Source: Zygnema circumcarinatum SAG 698-1b (lineage: Eukaryota; Plantae; Zygnematophyceae). From it: a stretch of DNA of 64,000 nt. A program made the translations under genes and the position numbers. The notes under the pieces were generated by a model. That model ran no database searches, was not told the origin of the DNA, and was given only the letters and a program-made list of their open reading frames with translations. The stretch lies in contig CM074819.1 of NCBI GenBank assembly GCA_037447605.1, positions 558,001-622,000 of the forward strand, given 5' to 3'. This document shows, one piece after another, positions 21,570 to 29,538 of this stretch. Every line of letters begins with the position of its first letter. Positions within the stretch are counted from its first letter, which is position 1.

Positions 21570-21720
21570 CTCGAAACTTTGAACCCTGAACCCTATTCGT
21601 TGAACCCTAAACCCTGAACCTCAAGCCCTGAACCCTAGACAATGAACCCTGAACCCTAGACCCTAAACCCCTAACCCTAAGCCCTGAACCCTGAACCCTG
21701 AACCCTGAACCCTACCCCCT
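21570..21720. repeat. Degenerate telomere-like (AAACCCT/GAACCCT)n array immediately upstream of ATG 21731
   Basis: Repeated aaccctaa and aaccctga units. Confidence 0.85.
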
Positions 21721-21730
21721 GACTCCTGCA

Positions 21731-24700
21731 ATGGCCCACCCGAAGTACGAGCTGAATGTGGTGATGTCCGGCCCCGGCGAGGATCTGGAGCTTCCGGATT
21801 TCGCGGCGCTGGAGGCGCTGGAGAGCCTTGGGGCGCACGTGGGAGGGATCCCGCACTATGCGGAGGACATGGCGTACGGAGCAGGTGGGGGGGGGGGGGG
21901 AAGCAGCGGGGGGAGCGGGGGGAGCCTCAAGGGCCCATCTTCCGCCACCTCAGTCAACGACTCGTCCTCGGATTGGCAGGCGCCCTTTGGAGGGTCGTTC
22001 GGCCAGCAGCACCTAAATTCGCTGGTAGGGCTCCAGGCGGTTTTCAGGGTTTAGGGTTTAGGGTTGAGGGATTAGGTTACGGTGCAGGGTTTAAGGTTCA
22101 GAGTCTAGGGTGTAGGGATTAGGTTTCAGAGTTTAGGGTCGAGGGATTAGGTTAGGGTTGAGGGATTAGGTTAGGGTTCAGGGATTAGGGATCAGAGTTT
22201 AGGGGTTAGGGCTTGGGGTTTAGGTTAGTGTTCGGGGTTTAGGTTAGAGTTTAGGGTTCATTGGTCAGGGTTCACGGTCTAGGTGAGAGGGTTAAGGGTC
22301 AGGGTTCAGCGTGTAGACTTCAAGGTTCAGGGCTCGAGATTCAGTGTTCAAGTTGCAAGGTGGAGGCGTCAGGTTCAGGAATTAGGGTTCGGACTTTGGT
22401 GTCAGGGTTCATGGCCCCGGGATGCGAGGTTGAGAGCTTCAGGTTCAGGGTTCAAGAGTCAAGGTTCGTAGTTTAGAATTTAAGAGGGTTCAGGGTTTAG
22501 ATTTTGAGTTTAGAGTTTTAATTCAAGGTTCAGGATTATGGTTTAGGGGGTGAGAGTCAGAGGTCTTTGAGCTGTTAGTGTTTAGAGATGTGTCGGGGGC
22601 TAGGGTTCAGGGATTTCTGGTGAGGGTGCAGATTTTGGGAGAGGGGGGGGTGGGGGGAAGAGGAGAGGGAGGAAAAAGGTAGGGTTCAGAGACCGGGAAA
22701 AGGGGTGTATCTTCAGGGGGGGAGCTCAGTGGAGGGCGAGAGATTGGCTTTGGGTGTCCTCACTCCTCACGGCAGGGTTCAAGTTGACGGATTGTATGTG
22801 AGCTCATGCATGCATGCATGTGTGAGCCATATGAGTCAAGGACAATTGGATATGAGGAGGGTATGTGTGTCCTCCTCAAACAAATGTATGATTGAATTTC
22901 ATTCCCTTGCTGTAATGCAGCTGGGAATCGGAGGCCTTGTGGGGAATAACATCAGTGTGGAGCAAGCGCTGACTATGAGCATAGCGCGGTCGGAGTCGGA
23001 GAACCGCAAGATCAAGCAGGAGAGGGACCACTTGGGGGAGGAGTGCAAGAAGCTAATGCAGGACAAGGCGGCGCTGGAGGAACGGATCCGCCGCTTTGAA
23101 GTGCTTGTGCAGAGCATGGGGATGTCGGCCTTCCAGCAGGCCATGCAGACGCTCAAGGATGCCTTCGATCAGGTGGGTGGGAGGGAGGGAGGTAGGGAGG
23201 GAGGGAGGGAGGGGGGGAGGGTGGGTGGTAGGTGTTTGGAGTGGGGGGAGGAGAGGGAGGGAGAGAGGGTGGTAGGTGTGGGGGTGGGGGAAGAGGGAGG
23301 GAGGCAGGGTGGTAAGTGTAGAAGTGGGGGGGGAGAGGGAGGAAAGGGGGAGGGAAGGAGACCGGGATTGGGGGGGAGAGGTAGAGAGGAGACGGGAGAA
23401 GGGGAGGGAGGGAGGAAGGGAGAGAGGGAGAGTGGTAGGGAAGGGAGTGTGGGGGAGGAGAGGCAGAGTGGGGGGGGGTTAGTGGGAGAATTGGGGGAAG
23501 TGGGAGGGAGCAAAGGGCAAGGGCGGGAGGTAGAGAGCGAGAGGGAGGGTGGTAAGGGAGGGAGTGGTGGGGGGAGGGGAGGAAGACAAAGTGGGAGGGA
23601 GGGAGGCAGGGAATGGGGGGGAGGGGAGGGAGTGGGAAAGAGTAGTAGAGGGGCAGATTGAGCGAGAATATGAGAGAAAGATATTTAGAGCGGTCGTCTG
23701 AGGAGACACGAAGGTATAGTCAAGTGAGAGAGGGGCACTCAAGAAGTGAGCCCGGAGATAGAGATGGGAGTCAAGAAAGAGAGAGTTAAGGGCAAGCGAG
23801 AGTGGGAAACTCTATGATTCGAAGGAGGAAAGAGAAAAGAGGATAGAAAAACTCAACAGCAGAGTGACGAAACTTAAAATTATGCGGTTCACTCGGATCA
23901 GTTGAGTTATGTTCTTCCTGCAGTTAGAACGAAGAAGATGATGTTGTGAAAGGTCTTTCGTGTGAAAGGTTATCCCCATTGTCTTGACTTGCTTGAATTC
24001 CTCTCCTTGTCTTCCTTTTTTCATTTCAGGCCCCAATTCCTCGCGGAATTCGCTTTGCTCCGACAGATGTTGAAGTTTTTGATTATCTATCGAGGAAGCT
24101 TCGCGGAGCTCAGGAAGATGTGGGGCTTGACCGATTCTTAGTTCGAAGGCTGAGGGGAGTGCAAGATGCAGATGGACTCATTCCAGAAGTTGAACTTTTG
24201 AAGTTTCCAAGACCATGGCATCTTCCAGGTTTGGGAAGACCTCTTAATTTTGATGATTTGGGATTTTAAGTGGTTTATCGCTGCTTGTGAAGGTTTGTTT
24301 GGAGTGTTTTTGATAAGGTTTGAGTTTGGTGTGACTGAAAGTTGGAGCTTTTGAGTGTTGCTGGGGGGGGGGGGGGGGGGGGGGGNNNNNNNNNNGGGGG
24401 GGGGAAAGGTGTTTGTTGTATTTGATTTGCGTTATATGTAAGGAACTGTTAGGGTTTCTGTGTTCGCTATGTATTTCCTGAATTCCTGTAAATGCATTTA
24501 TGCTTTTAGAGCTCTTTGCTTGTGAATGCATTTTCATTTTGCATTCATTTTCGTTGTTGAATGCTGTGATAATGATGTCAATGATGATGTCAACGGTGGT
24601 GATGATGATTCGATTTCTTCCTTTCTTCCTCTTGAAATTTTCTGTTGTTTATTTTTCAGGATTGGATGTTGCCCCTGACGGAAAAGGGCAAGTTGGGTTC

Positions 24701-27679
24701 TACTTCGTTCGTCCTGAATGGCGACCAAATGAAAGAAGGAGGAGAAGGGAGGCAGATATGGCTGCCCGGGATGGAAAACCTCCCTGCTGGAAAGAGTCTT
24801 GCCAACCCACTACCTTTGATGATCTAAGGAAAGAATATGGGGGAAAACCGGAAAGAAGAATGTTTAGATTCAAGCTGCCCGGAACGAGAGAGGGCCCTGC
24901 GGGAGAGAAGAAGGAGAAGTGGAAGATGTATGAGTATACACTCAAATCGGATGCGGAGATGTATGAAGATAGGAGGAATGGGTTGCCAGTATGGGTCATA
25001 TGTAAGGTGGTGAGAGAGGGACCTATGACGATAGATGAGATCGAAGAGCATGAGGAGAGGATGGGAGGGAGTGGTTTTCCTGGCAACGGTAACGGAAATT
25101 TCTTTAACGGAAGTTTAGGGAGAGGTTTTGGGGTTCAGGATGGGTCATCTTCGTCGGGTACAGGGGGTTCAGGAGTTACAGGTTCAGGACATAACTATGG
25201 AGGAGGGTTTGGAGGAGGAGCAATGCAGTATGGGTTGATGCATGCAGGAGGAGAGGTAGGGGAGGGAGTGAAGGGTTCAGGAGTCTCTCTTAACCCTAAA
25301 ACCCTGAACCGGGGGTTAATAGAATGGTTGCAGTCAGTGCCCCCCCCTCCCGCTCTGAAAGATCGAAGGCTGAGTGGTCTAGAGAGTAACAATCCGAAGG
25401 GATTGGCTGCTCTTTTACAGAACGTGTTGGCTGGGAGAGTGGGAGGAGAGAGAGAGAGAGAGAGGGAGAGAGTGACACCTGTTGCTGGATGGATGGCGGG
25501 ATTCCCAGATGCTCAGAAGGTAGTGGGAGCTCTACTGGAAGACTTCTTTGTTAGTAAGCTGGTGGTGAAGTTGAGACCGGTGGAAAAGGGAGAGAGAGGG
25601 GGAGAGAGAGGAGAGAGAGGGGGAGAGAGAGGGGAGAGGGGGTTGCAACCTCCGAGCTGGAGGAGAGCCCTCACAGATGAAGACTGGAAAAGGAGAGAGG
25701 GAGAGGGAGAGGAGGAGGAGGAAGAGCTCCCTCCCGAAGATTCAGAAGAAGAAGATTCGGAAACTGAATGCGAATTTGACGAAGAAGATGGATCATTCAA
25801 ACCCATTTCTGGGAGCGAATTAGATTCACTCGCTACTAACATGCTGACCGAAGTGAAAAACTTATCTAACGCACTTGCAGCTTCCTCAGAAAAAGAAATT
25901 TCCGGTCGGCTGAAAGGTTTTCTCTCACAAACTTCAGTTGTTCTCTCCGAGTTCATTAGCCAGGCGGGACGTGACGAACCGGCTGCCCAACTTTGGCTCG
26001 AGTCACTTCAGGACAGTCTGAGTAAAGTTCGGGCAGTGATAGAGAGCTTAGCAGGTGACTCACAATCGAGAATTTTTTTACTCGTAAAAAGTCCGGAAAT
26101 GGCCATTCAGGCTCAGACAGCTGTCAGACGATTAGCTCATGTTCTCTCTCTCCTTCCAAATGTACATTTGGATTTTATGTCGGCAGATGTACGGCGACAA
26201 TTGGGTGAGCTAAAAGGGGCTATGGTGAGTGAAAATTTTGCTCCCATGGCTTCTACAGTGAAAGCTCTGAGTAAACTTCTTCAGATAGCAGTGAATGGAG
26301 GGAAATTGGGAGGTCAAGGAGAGGATGAGAAGGGAGAACATACGGAAAAAGTCGAAAAAAATCGCGATTTCGATTTCAGTACTGACGATATTGCGGGAAT
26401 CAAAGCTCTGAATCAGTTGAAGGAAGCTTTACTGGGATTTTCAAACAATTCGGGTCCGAAAAATTTCACGTATCCGTCCCCTGTGATGAGTAATCTTGTG
26501 ATTGAAGTGTTTTCTCTCGTTGGGGTTGAGTGGGACTCTTCCGCGGTTGAGATAGAATTGGAACGACTCGAGAAAGTTTCGGAAGGCGAGAAAAAGAAGA
26601 AAATTGTGGTGAAAAATGTGAAGAAGGAGGAGGAAGAAGATGCAGCTTTGGCTGAGGGAGTGATCGCTTTATTGAAAGCATTCTCTTCAGGAGGTGCAGT
26701 TACCAACATGGAACAAGAAGAAATGAAAGGAGTAGAGAAGAAGGGGAAAGCAGTCGATTTCGACATAGAACTGCCGTTGCCAGCTCCGTTAGTCTACAGT
26801 TGCAGAGTGTTCAGCCAATCCGAAGTGGATAGTGTACAAGGAGAGAGGGTACAAGACGTGCTTTCAGGAAACTTGAATGGAGTTCCCGTAAGTTTGGTAT
26901 ATGTAGACCAAAACAAAGTTTCTGAAATCGCATTACACCGAGAAGTAGAAGCTGTGGCAGCAATTCGGCATCCAAATATCGCCTCTCTGATTGGCTGCTG
27001 CCCAGAATCAGCCTGCTTAGTCTATGAGAAACTGCCACCTGGCAGTTTAGAAGACTACCTACAACAGTCTGCCGGAACTCCCCGTTTCCCAGAAATTCCT
27101 CTCTCCTGGTCAACCCGATTCCGAATCATCCACGAAATTGCCTCTGCTTTAGCCTTTCTCCACGACCGAAAAGTCCTTCACCGTGATGTACGACCTGCAA
27201 ACATCATGATAGGCTGGGAATCCCCACAAACCCTAAAAAATGGACCCAAAAACTGGCCTGTTGAACAGACCCCCGGAGCAACAATAGTGAGCAAACTTGC
27301 TAGAGTCGGAGTAGCTGCTCTTGGACGAGAACATGAACCCGGAAAAACCCCCATGGATGTAGATGGTCTATATCTCGACCCCGCATTTGCTCGCTCAGAA
27401 TGCTTCTTTGTTCCTGCTGCCGATGTATATGCATTGGGAGTTATTATGGCCCAACTTTTGACCGGCCGCCATCCCCCCAGTGCGGTCAGAGCGGTCGCCT
27501 CCGCCTTTGACGGAGGCAGAAAAACGGTCCAATCGGTCTTAGACGGGCGGGCGGGGGAGTGGCCATTGAGAGAGGCGGAGGAGGTAGCGCGGGCCGCGTG
27601 GAGGTGTTCGATGTTGGAGAGGGCGGCGAGGCCGGAGTTAAAGGAGGTCCTGCCGGCGCTGGCGAAGGTGAGGGTTTAG
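21731..27679 (+). CDS. Multidomain fusion protein (~1250 aa): coiled-coil/leucine zipper - divergent NAC domain - MLKL-NTD/UND-like helical bundle - RLCK-IX/PUB-type pseudokinase
   Basis: Exons 21731-22024, 22921-23172, 24030-24228, 24660-27679 are in phase. NAC motifs: IPRGIRFAPTDVEVFDYLSRKL, IPEVELLKFPRPWHLP, FYFVRP, CWKES, KWKMYEYTL, WVICKV. The same ORF continues to a helical bundle (LQDSLSKVRAVIE..SRIFLLV..LAHVLSLLP..SADVRRQL) and a kinase fold (IRHPNIASLIGCCPESACLVYE, LSWSTRFRI, HRDVRPANI, YLDP, DVYALG, WP..EAE). A possible AAG|GTGAG donor at 27667 may add a short last exon at ~28871. Confidence 0.85.
22045..22620. repeat. Degenerate telomere-like (TTTAGGG/TTCAGGG)n array in intron 1 of the fusion gene
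   Basis: Repeated gggtttag, gggttag and gggttcag units over about 570 bp. Confidence 0.85.
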
Positions 27680-27819
27680 GGTTTAGGGAGGGGGGAGGGT
27701 GGAGGAGGGGAGGAGGGGGAGGGAGGGGGGGGAGGGGGTAGGGGGAGGGGGAGGGAGGGGGTGGGGGGTGGGGGGAGGGGTGGGAGGGGGAGAAGGGGGG
27801 AGGGGGAGGGGGGGGGGGG

Positions 27820-27884
<65 letters not shown>

Positions 27885-28745
27885 GGGGGGGGAGGTGGGG
27901 GAGGGGGGAGGGGGGAGGGGAGGGGAGGGGGGAGGGGGGGAGGGGGAGGGGGAGGAGGAAGGGGGATGGGAGAGGGGGAGGGAGGGAGGGGAGGGGGAGG
28001 GAGGGGAGGGGGAGAATGGGGGAGGGGGAGAAGGGGGGAGGGTGGAGGGGGGAGGGGGAGGGGGAGGGGGGGGGAGGGGAGGGGGGAGGAGTGGGGGAGG
28101 GGAGGAGGGGAGGGGGGAGGTGGGGGGAGGGGGAGGGGGAGGGGGGAGGGGGGAGGGTGGAGGGGGGAGGGGGAGGGGGAGGGGGGAGGGGGAGGAGGGG
28201 GAGGGGGGGGGGGAGGAGGAGGAGGAGGGGGAGGTGGAGGGGTGGAGGGGGAAGGGGGAGGGGGGAGGGGGGGAGGGGGGGGAGGGGGGGAGAGGGGGAG
28301 GGGGAGGGGGGGAGGAGGAGGGGAAGGGGGATGGGAGAGGGGGAGGAGGAGGGGAGGGGAGGGGGATGAGGGGAGGAGGGGGAGGTGGGGGGAGGGGGGG
28401 GGAGGGGGGGAGGGGGGAGGGGGGAGGGGGGAGGGAGGAGGGGGAAGGGGGATGGGAGAGGGGAGGGGAGGGGAGGGGGGAGGGGGAGGGGGAGGTGATG
28501 GGAGGGGAGGAGGGAGGGGAGGGGGGAGGGGGGAGGGGGGAGGAAGGGGGAGGGGGAGGGGGAGGGAGGTGAGGAAGTGGGGAGGAGGGAGGGAGGGGGA
28601 GGAGAGGGGACGGGGGATGGGGAGGGGAAAAGGGGAGGGGAGGGGGAATGTGGGGATGGGGGGGAGGGGGGGGAGGGGGGGAGGGGGAAGGGGAGGGTTG
28701 AGGGGGGATGGTTGAGGGGGGAGGGGGGAGGGGGTAGGGTTGAGG
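27676..28745. repeat. ~1.07-kb G-rich polypurine tract with long G runs
   Basis: Almost only G and A, with G homopolymers >40 nt around 27810-27870. It begins with TTTAGGG units. Confidence 0.85.
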
Positions 28746-29538
28746 TTTGAGGTTCAGTTCAGCTTAGCTCAGTCAGTTCACTTCAGTTCAGTTCAGTTGC
28801 GTTACATGCCAAAAATAACATCTGAACTCTCTATGCTGATTGATGATGATCTGATGTTTGCGGGGTTCAGGTGGCGGCGAATTGCTGATTCCTGAAGTGA
28901 TTTACGGAGGCGATCCGTATCCATGTAACTATGATAATTATGACAGTTGGCAGGTTTTCGGATTCACATGCGATGCATAAGAAAGGTTTACAGTTCAAAA
29001 AAGTAACCGTGTACCTATCTGAGGGTCTTTTTTTTTTTTTTCCCTTTTTTTTTTTTATCAGCCATGTACTGCCCAATTTCTTGGCCCTGGTGGTTGGTGG
29101 AGAAATTTAGGGTTTAAGGTTATACTTGGAATTTTAAGTTTAGGGGTTAGGGTTCAAGGCTCTGGTCTGTTGTATAGTAAACTTGGCATCAGAGGCTCAG
29201 TTTAAGGTATGAAACTTGGTTGAATGGGGATGTTGAATCAAGAAAAAGAGGTGGGTGTGAACAGGGAACATTTCTGAGCCTGTTTAGACTTGAAAACCTC
29301 GTCATCATTAGAGAAATTTATCTATATTTTATGTCTTGTGTGCTTTCGTTACGTTTGACTGAACCTCAAACCCCACATTATATAAAACCTCAACCCTAAA
29401 CCCCAAACCTTGAAACCTACCCCTTTATAAACCCTTAAGCCTACTCTACATCAACCCTACCCTGTAAACCCTAAACACCCACTCTGTTCCCTTCGCCCTC
29501 CCTCCGTCCTTTTTTGAATGCAATGTTTTGTTGCTCAC

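Follow-up and report, generated by a model that had tools for sequence, protein, structure and literature searches.

A 64,000-nucleotide stretch of contig CM074819.1 from the alga Zygnema circumcarinatum SAG 698-1b (positions 558,001 to 622,000; hereafter the window) raises the question of whether a NAC transcription-factor domain, a helical bundle and a kinase fold belong to a single gene, and what such a protein might do. On the + strand, an open reading frame (ORF) of 1059 codons at 24500-27679 contains part of the NAM (NAC) domain, a helical region and a kinase domain. A first-pass annotation had interpreted this locus as a possible MLKL-like cell-death executor or immune sensor. The analysis described here indicates that the locus is a real, expressed fusion gene.

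Contigs from four public RNA runs of the same organism (among them X1, X3 and X4), placed on window positions 21720-27719, served as RNA evidence. Together with the sequence at the exon borders, they give a gene model with five coding exons and a product of 1256 amino acids that is free of internal stops (Table 1). Positions 24228 and 24660 are joined at GT..AG borders on one contig in each of X1, X3 and X4. This contig, in X1 and X3, further connects 21898/21915-22024 with 22921-23172 and then with 24030-24228, and it extends to 25432. Because contigs in X1, X3 and X4 cross GT..AG joints, spliced RNA is present in these runs. These joints bear out the earlier proposal that NAC subdomains A-B and a coiled coil are spliced in phase upstream of the long frame. 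The start codon in exon 1 was inferred as the first in-frame ATG past a stop; RNA covers 21898-22024 of this exon, with the splice at 22024, and the alignment of its product with a homologous transcript (P0001) begins at model residue 41.

The assembly contains a gap at 24386-24395, a run of N of uncertain length within a poly-G tract of intron 3. The flanks of the gap are ordered on the same spliced contigs, and the gap is therefore intronic. The protein junction over this intron, RPWHLP followed by GLDVAPDG, is collinear with the homologues without any indel, indicating that the coding sequence is complete at the gap. A misjoin, which had been named beforehand as grounds for abandoning the fusion, is largely refuted by these observations.

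At the 3' end, a second contig spans 25480-27670 in all four runs, with a loose end identical to 28874-28903. The true donor lies after 27667 (AAG followed by GTGAGG) and the acceptor before 28871, and the joint from 27667 to 28871 is present in all four runs. A terminal mini-exon at 28871-28888 supplies VAANC and the stop codon, placing the end of the coding sequence (CDS) at 28888. Owing to the splice at 27667, the stop of the long ORF at 27677-27679 is intronic. The uninterrupted frame first described at 24660-27679 is thus open and does carry NAC subdomains C-E, bundle and kinase, but the exon itself ends at 27667.

The contig with the NAC part and the contig with the bundle and kinase break at a GA microsatellite (25433-25479), a repeat that was masked in the contig alignment. 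The unaligned contig tails at the break (40 and 34 nt) exceed the 47-nt gap between the contigs. Seven of nine sampled 31-mers over 25390-25525 are contained in X1, and the reading frame is open throughout the 1003 codons that span NAC C-E to the kinase. The NAC part and the bundle and kinase very likely lie on one RNA molecule, with support pieced together from two contigs rather than from one read.

Table 1. Features of the NAC-bundle-pseudokinase gene (window positions; aa, residues of the 1256-residue model; UTR, untranslated region).
Feature	Position	Strand	Description and evidence
Exon 1 CDS	21731..22024	+	aa 1-98; Gly/Ser-rich acidic N-terminus; start codon inferred
Exon 2 CDS	22921..23172	+	aa 99-182; predicted coiled coil just upstream of NAC domain; RNA joints 22024>22921 and 23172>24030
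Exon 3 CDS	24030..24228	+	aa 183-249; NAC subdomains A-B; NAM 1-26; spliced in X1, X3, X4
Intron 3	24229..24659	+	GT..AG; includes gap 24386-24395; joint in three runs
Exon 4, start	24660..25040	+	aa 249-375; NAC subdomains C-E; NAM 53-122 and family alignment
Exon 4, linker	25041..25792	+	aa 376-626; disordered, Gly-rich and acidic; composition, BLAST homology, repeats
Exon 4, six-helix bundle	25793..26332	+	aa 627-806; predicted U-box N-terminal domain / MCAfunc / MLKL_N fold; AlphaFold2 and structure matches
Exon 4, second helical region	26333..26794	+	aa 807-960; low-confidence model; family-conserved
Exon 4, pseudokinase	26795..27667	+	aa 961-1251; RLK/Pelle type; Pkinase and PK_Tyr_Ser-Thr, E 1e-20
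Intron 4	27668..28870	+	telomere-like GGTTTAGGG repeat at start, then G-rich low-complexity array
Exon 5	28871..29056	+	VAANC and stop at 28871-28888, then 3' UTR to about 29056

Homologues of the fusion were retrieved from several other sources. With the long exon as query, proteins of 1008-1457 aa containing both NAM and Pkinase were found in Mesotaenium endlicherianum, Closterium (three entries) and Spirogloea muscicola, along with one de novo Trinity transcript. The NAC-region query returned the same set and a second Spirogloea protein. The spliced model aligns with the homologues end to end, with 49-67% identity over the coiled coil and NAC domain and about 30-34% elsewhere. The Trinity transcript (P0001) includes every part of the fusion. 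In the window, NAC C-E, bundle and kinase lie within a single exon. One uninterrupted exon of Closterium P0003 encodes the N-terminus, NAC, linker and bundle (residues 1-1107), and in the Closterium paralogue P0005 the bundle and kinase (residues 604-1457) likewise share an exon. An environmental contig from a JGI metagenome (L002:1100-5750; 63% G+C) encodes the coiled coil, NAC A-B, NAC C-E, the linker block, the bundle and the kinase in the same order, with an intron at the position of intron 3 of the window, between NAC subdomains B and C. Throughout the family the domain order is fixed: a variable N-terminus, coiled coil, NAC, acidic disordered linker, six-helix bundle, second helical region, RLK/Pelle-type pseudokinase and a C-terminal Cys. 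Short NAC-only relatives of the family NAC region were not found in a word-limited search, which makes this weak evidence. By sequence comparison, the fusion is a family conserved across Zygnematophyceae. The search for the same architecture that the first-pass annotation had suggested thus yielded collinear homologues in Mesotaenium, Closterium, Spirogloea, the Trinity transcript and the environmental contig, and its statement that no protein with this domain order was known gave way to unnamed database homologues in at least four other zygnematophytes. The environmental member, from an uncultured alga, had been predicted as several small ORFs by gene-calling software made for prokaryotes.

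Selection was estimated as Nei-Gojobori dN/dS between the Closterium copies. The values are 0.04-0.05 for the coiled coil and NAC domain, 0.05-0.09 for the bundle, 0.14-0.25 for the second helical region, 0.21 for the linker and 0.30 for the pseudokinase. Purifying selection is seen in every part and is strongest on the NAC domain and the bundle.

The NAC domain is divided between exons 3 and 4. A Pfam scan of the whole ORF at 24500-27679 did not match NAM, which was matched only when the pieces were scanned separately. The exon 3 piece (24030-24227) matches NAM (PF02365) positions 1-26 with an E-value of 7.4e-5 and 23.7 bits, and the exon 4 piece (24662-25060) matches positions 53-122 with 8.2e-4 and 20.3 bits, each alone falling below the gathering cut-off of 27 bits. 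The homologues exceed this cut-off, with NAM scores of 28.6-39.9 bits, and the match covers positions 1-122 in four of five and 12-122 in P0006. The window NAC domain is 67% identical to that of the Mesotaenium homologue P0002, residues 150-400 of which match only NAC domains among solved structures (ANAC019, SNAC1 and ANAC092; E 1e-4 to 1e-2). Judged by these profiles, the two NAM pieces complement each other as parts of one NAC domain, as had been proposed. The C-E region carries the invariant family blocks FFVRPEWRPNERRRRRE, KPPCWKESCQPT and KEKWKMYEYTLKSD, and the NAC blocks are near-invariant from Spirogloea through Closterium. Of the DNA-contact elements, W-K and the Arg-rich loop are retained and family-invariant, but ATG gives way to ESC with an insertion. 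Upstream of the NAC domain, the exon 2 segment gives coiled-coil profile matches, including DivIC at 5e-5, and is kept in the homologues. Downstream, the linker contains a conserved block at about residues 466-560 (BLAST homology begins at residue 466), GA/GERG microsatellites and an acidic stretch. No transmembrane segment was found anywhere in the predicted protein.

The helical bundle was modelled by an AlphaFold2 run on residues 627-806 with a nine-sequence alignment. The model (pLDDT 83.7, pTM 0.77) consists of four long and two shorter helices. In Foldseek comparisons of this predicted model with the predicted models of Swiss-Prot, the top 18 matches were the N-terminal domains of PUB1, 4, 6, 7, 12-19 and 45, SPL11, MCA1, MCA2 and CNR13, with a probability of 1.00, TM 0.70-0.75 and rmsd 2.4-2.8 A over 150-174 residues. 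Also among predicted models, the best AlphaFold cluster is Selaginella D8R2D4 (TM 0.77, rmsd 1.9 A), followed by clusters of U-box, MCAfunc, MLK-domain and fungal N-terminal-domain proteins, and a PUB13-like cluster of the ESM Atlas matches with TM 0.82. Foldseek against the Protein Data Bank (PDB) gave no significant E-value; among the listed PDB matches, probability and TM are both highest for the MLKL executioner domain (probability 0.96, TM 0.54/0.66, E 0.79). Re-alignment against solved structures placed the MLKL N-terminal domain at Z 11.5-13.2 over 137-146 residues, nearly its full length, the top Z of 13.2 being tied with the HIP1R THATCH core; for helical bundles, Z near 13 is common and may reflect shared arrangement alone.

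Pfam PUB10_N scores 14.3-15.6 bits against the helical middle (cut-off 32.6). In the Pfam scans, no MLKL_N match was found in the window pieces and no U-box anywhere in the protein. No sequence match to solved MLKL was found, and the bundle profile run against PDB sequences gave nothing meaningful. An exhaustive HMMER/phmmer search with residues 634-960 recovered only family members and two short proteins, P0097 and P0098. P0097 is the bundle exon of the environmental family member on L002. P0098 (phmmer E 5.9e-4) corresponds to exon 1 of a U-box-ARM ligase gene (L003:1836-7386) and itself matches MCAfunc (1e-8), PUB10_N and, weakly, MLKL_N. This MCAfunc/U-box N-terminal domain (UND) protein is the sole non-family protein linked to the bundle by library-wide sequence search. 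As modelled, the bundle is a member of the UND/MCAfunc/MLKL_N structural group, closest to UND. The second helical region shows helices at 199-298 of model 1, with pLDDT 50-67. A U-box downstream of the kinase was also considered and rejected, as the CDS ends five codons past the last splice.

Pfam identifies the kinase region as Pkinase and PK_Tyr_Ser-Thr (E about 1e-20), and Foldseek of the bundle and kinase model returned kinases exclusively. The best solved relatives of the kinase domain are IRAK4, PBL2, BIK1, BRI1 and CERK1, with LYK3 likewise among the best, which identifies the kinase as RLK/Pelle type. MLKL is absent from the best 60 solved chains. The first sequence matches outside the family, in a search over proteins of at least 551 aa, are P0008 (USP and kinase), P0009 and P0010 (kinase and U-box, PUB35 type), with about 35% identity and E-values of 1e-35 to 1e-29. 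In the alignment with USP and U-box kinases, the beta3 Lys (VAIK) is replaced by Val in the window and by Glu in most homologues. The window kinase also has Arg in place of the DFG Asp and a degenerate Gly loop; the HRD Asp and Asn are retained, with HRDLK appearing as HRDVR. A family-specific insertion separates the catalytic loop from the DFG position. The Spirogloea member has kept the beta3 Lys and lost the Asp of both HRD and DFG. None of the nine family members compared has the DFG Asp, indicating that the pseudokinase state is old and has been kept. On the evidence of these residues, the kinase domain is catalytically dead.

The architecture proposed in the first-pass annotation therefore holds, and its MLKL-like interpretation holds in part. 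A four-helix-bundle-type domain, a pseudokinase and a fold-level match to MLKL (Z 13.2, probability 0.96) were found, but the bundle is nearest to UND/MCA and the kinase to RLK/Pelle. The profile searches it had recommended recovered the NAM pieces and Pkinase but not MLKL_N, whereas structure prediction and Foldseek gave a confidently modelled bundle fold with UND/MCA and MLKL-type matches.

A Cys is located at or beside the last residue in P0002, P0006, P0099 and P0001, and the ends among the window protein and its relatives are VAANC, LSVC, ASC and FCE. In the window this C-terminal Cys is encoded solely by the RNA-supported mini-exon at 28871-28888. The Closterium models are without it and may miss a comparable exon, and at least some public database models seem to be without the terminal mini-exon.

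The protein resembles several known systems in part. As in NAC (NAM/ATAF/CUC) factors, including the membrane-tethered NTL proteins, NAC subdomains A-E lie near the N-terminus, ahead of a long region that is acidic and disordered. The timing of activation in NTLs is set by the C-terminal end, which is similar to the gating proposed below. In contrast to these proteins, a coiled coil precedes the NAC domain, the contact strand is WKESC with an R-rich loop, and the C-terminus is a folded bundle and pseudokinase rather than a transmembrane helix; the window family has been seen in Zygnematophyceae only. The bundle shares the six-helix fold (TM 0.70-0.82, rmsd 1.9-2.8 A between predicted models) with the UND of U-box ARM E3 ligases (PUB10-19, SPL11) and the MCAfunc domain of MCA1/2, with a weak direct sequence link (E 5.9e-4 to the UND exon). 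Unlike in those proteins, it occurs without a U-box, ARM or MCA channel part, it stands mid-protein ahead of a kinase fold, and PUB10_N is far under threshold. Animal MLKL and plant MLKL-like proteins have the same succession of bundle, helical connector and pseudokinase, and the bundle superposes on the executioner domain, whereas the protein described here, known from sequence and models, has no MLKL_N sequence match, an RLK/Pelle pseudokinase and 626 preceding residues that include the NAC domain. The nearest kinases outside the family are of the RLCK-IX type (USP-kinase and kinase-U-box proteins, e.g., PUB35; about 35% identity), with which the motifs CPE..CLVYE, DPEY.RT, DVYALG and QLLTG are held in common; here the catalytic residues are lost, an insertion precedes DFG and there is no USP or U-box domain.

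We favour the interpretation that the gene encodes a NAC transcription factor gated by its own C-terminal bundle-pseudokinase unit, to which, as a proposed function, we assign a probability of roughly 55%. Constraint is strongest in the NAC domain, which is fixed throughout the class; this speaks for an output role rather than that of an integrated decoy. On this reading, the protein would be kept dimeric or oligomeric on DNA by the coiled coil and NAC subdomain A, and the acidic linker could serve as an activation region. An active kinase may dock on the dead kinase fold, which would serve as a receiver, and the bundle next to it would respond by a shift in oligomeric state, partner binding or localisation. 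Such gating would be akin to the control of the MLKL bundle by its pseudokinase and to the membrane-tethered NACs, which are inactive until a signal arrives. Several points weigh against this interpretation. The canonical WKATG strand of the NAC domain is WKESC here, with an insertion; DNA binding is predicted from sequence, and the gating mechanism is proposed by analogy. We also keep a membrane-directed activity in consideration, because the MLKL executioner domain has the same type of bundle fold. Finally, the NAC-part contig has a depth 1.6-2.8x below that of the bundle and kinase contig (96-160 versus 256-305), and from this step and the contig break, the C-terminal half may have a separate shorter transcript.

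That last point leads to the somewhat unlikely possibility of two products at one locus, the full-length protein together with either a shorter, internally initiated bundle-pseudokinase protein or an isoform limited to the NAC part. The depth step would fit the former. The latter would fit a minor contig (depth about 6-7, in X3/X4) that departs at 25071/25072, at an AG/GT boundary, and whose continuation past 25071 was not found within the 64-kb window; it could stem from a paralogue, be a chimeric contig or mark an alternative donor that leads to a NAC-only isoform. However, contig depth is a poor measure of transcript abundance, and the step could be explained by 3' bias as well as by an additional internal start. 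The frame is uninterrupted for 1003 codons, the linker (dN/dS 0.21) includes conserved blocks, and the homologous models and the Trinity transcript are full length. It is scarcely credible that the fusion is an artefact, whether a misjoin at the gap, a chance read-through of two neighbour genes or a decaying pseudogene. The gap of uncertain length, the microsatellites in the exon and the single NAM pieces under the gathering threshold would allow such an explanation, but spliced contigs in three runs cross the gap intron, its junction agrees with the homologues, at least five other sources contain collinear homologues and purifying selection acts on every part.

The reading closest to the original one, an MLKL-like cell-death executor or immune sensor in which the NAC domain is an integrated effector decoy, is now improbable. 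It would be consistent with the MLKL-like order of bundle, helical linker and pseudokinase, with the MLKL executioner domain having the best probability and TM in the listed PDB matches and sharing the top Z of 13.2 with HIP1R THATCH, and with language-model neighbours that are MCAfunc-kinase and MLKL_N-kinase proteins. However, integrated decoys are typically lineage-specific, and here the NAC domain exceeds all other parts in conservation and constraint and is fixed class-wide. The bundle is internal (residues 627-806) rather than N-terminal, and its nearest relatives are the U-box UNDs and MCA, which to our knowledge are not pore formers. The MLKL_N profile is not matched, a Z of about 13 may reflect a common helical arrangement, and the kinase lineage is RLK/Pelle rather than MLKL. 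It is rather doubtful, too, that the protein is a one-polypeptide switch specific to the sister lineage of land plants, in which the MLKL-like bundle-pseudokinase unit would respond to a cue from a pathogen or to an upstream kinase and then activate or release the NAC arm or form a membrane-active oligomer, coupling a cell-death-type module to transcription.

NAC factors, the docking domains of U-box ligases, MLKL-like bundles and RLK/Pelle kinases are central to stress and immune signalling in land plants, and three such parts are united here in one protein from an alga that is a close relative of land plants. The literature searched, including the Zygnema genome paper and its supplements, contained no description of a NAC-kinase fusion, a search of incomplete coverage that yields absence of evidence only. 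If the C-terminal unit gates the NAC domain, the family would be a compact, testable case of kinase-type signalling wired to transcription before or around plant terrestrialisation, and it would provide a natural handle on the role of a UND/MLKL_N-like bundle without an attached U-box.

Low-complexity sequence in the introns generates several misleading ORFs. The ORF at 22705-23661 was rejected as wholly coding, with only 22921-23172 being exonic: in intron 2 (23173-23700), a purine-rich GGA/GGG microsatellite stretches the coiled-coil exon into this 318-aa ORF, which is mostly non-coding. The G-rich array of intron 4 (about 1 kb) yields long spurious Gly/Arg/Glu ORFs. Intron 4 opens with the telomere-like GGTTTAGGGTTTAGGG, whose TAG is the apparent stop of the long ORF. 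Further telomere-like variants of TTTAGGG are located at 22040-22076 in intron 1 and at 29100-29160, just past the 3' UTR. Many unrelated RNA contigs (depth 83-128) touch 22040-22076, suggesting that a TTTAGGG-like motif is present in many transcripts of Zygnema circumcarinatum.

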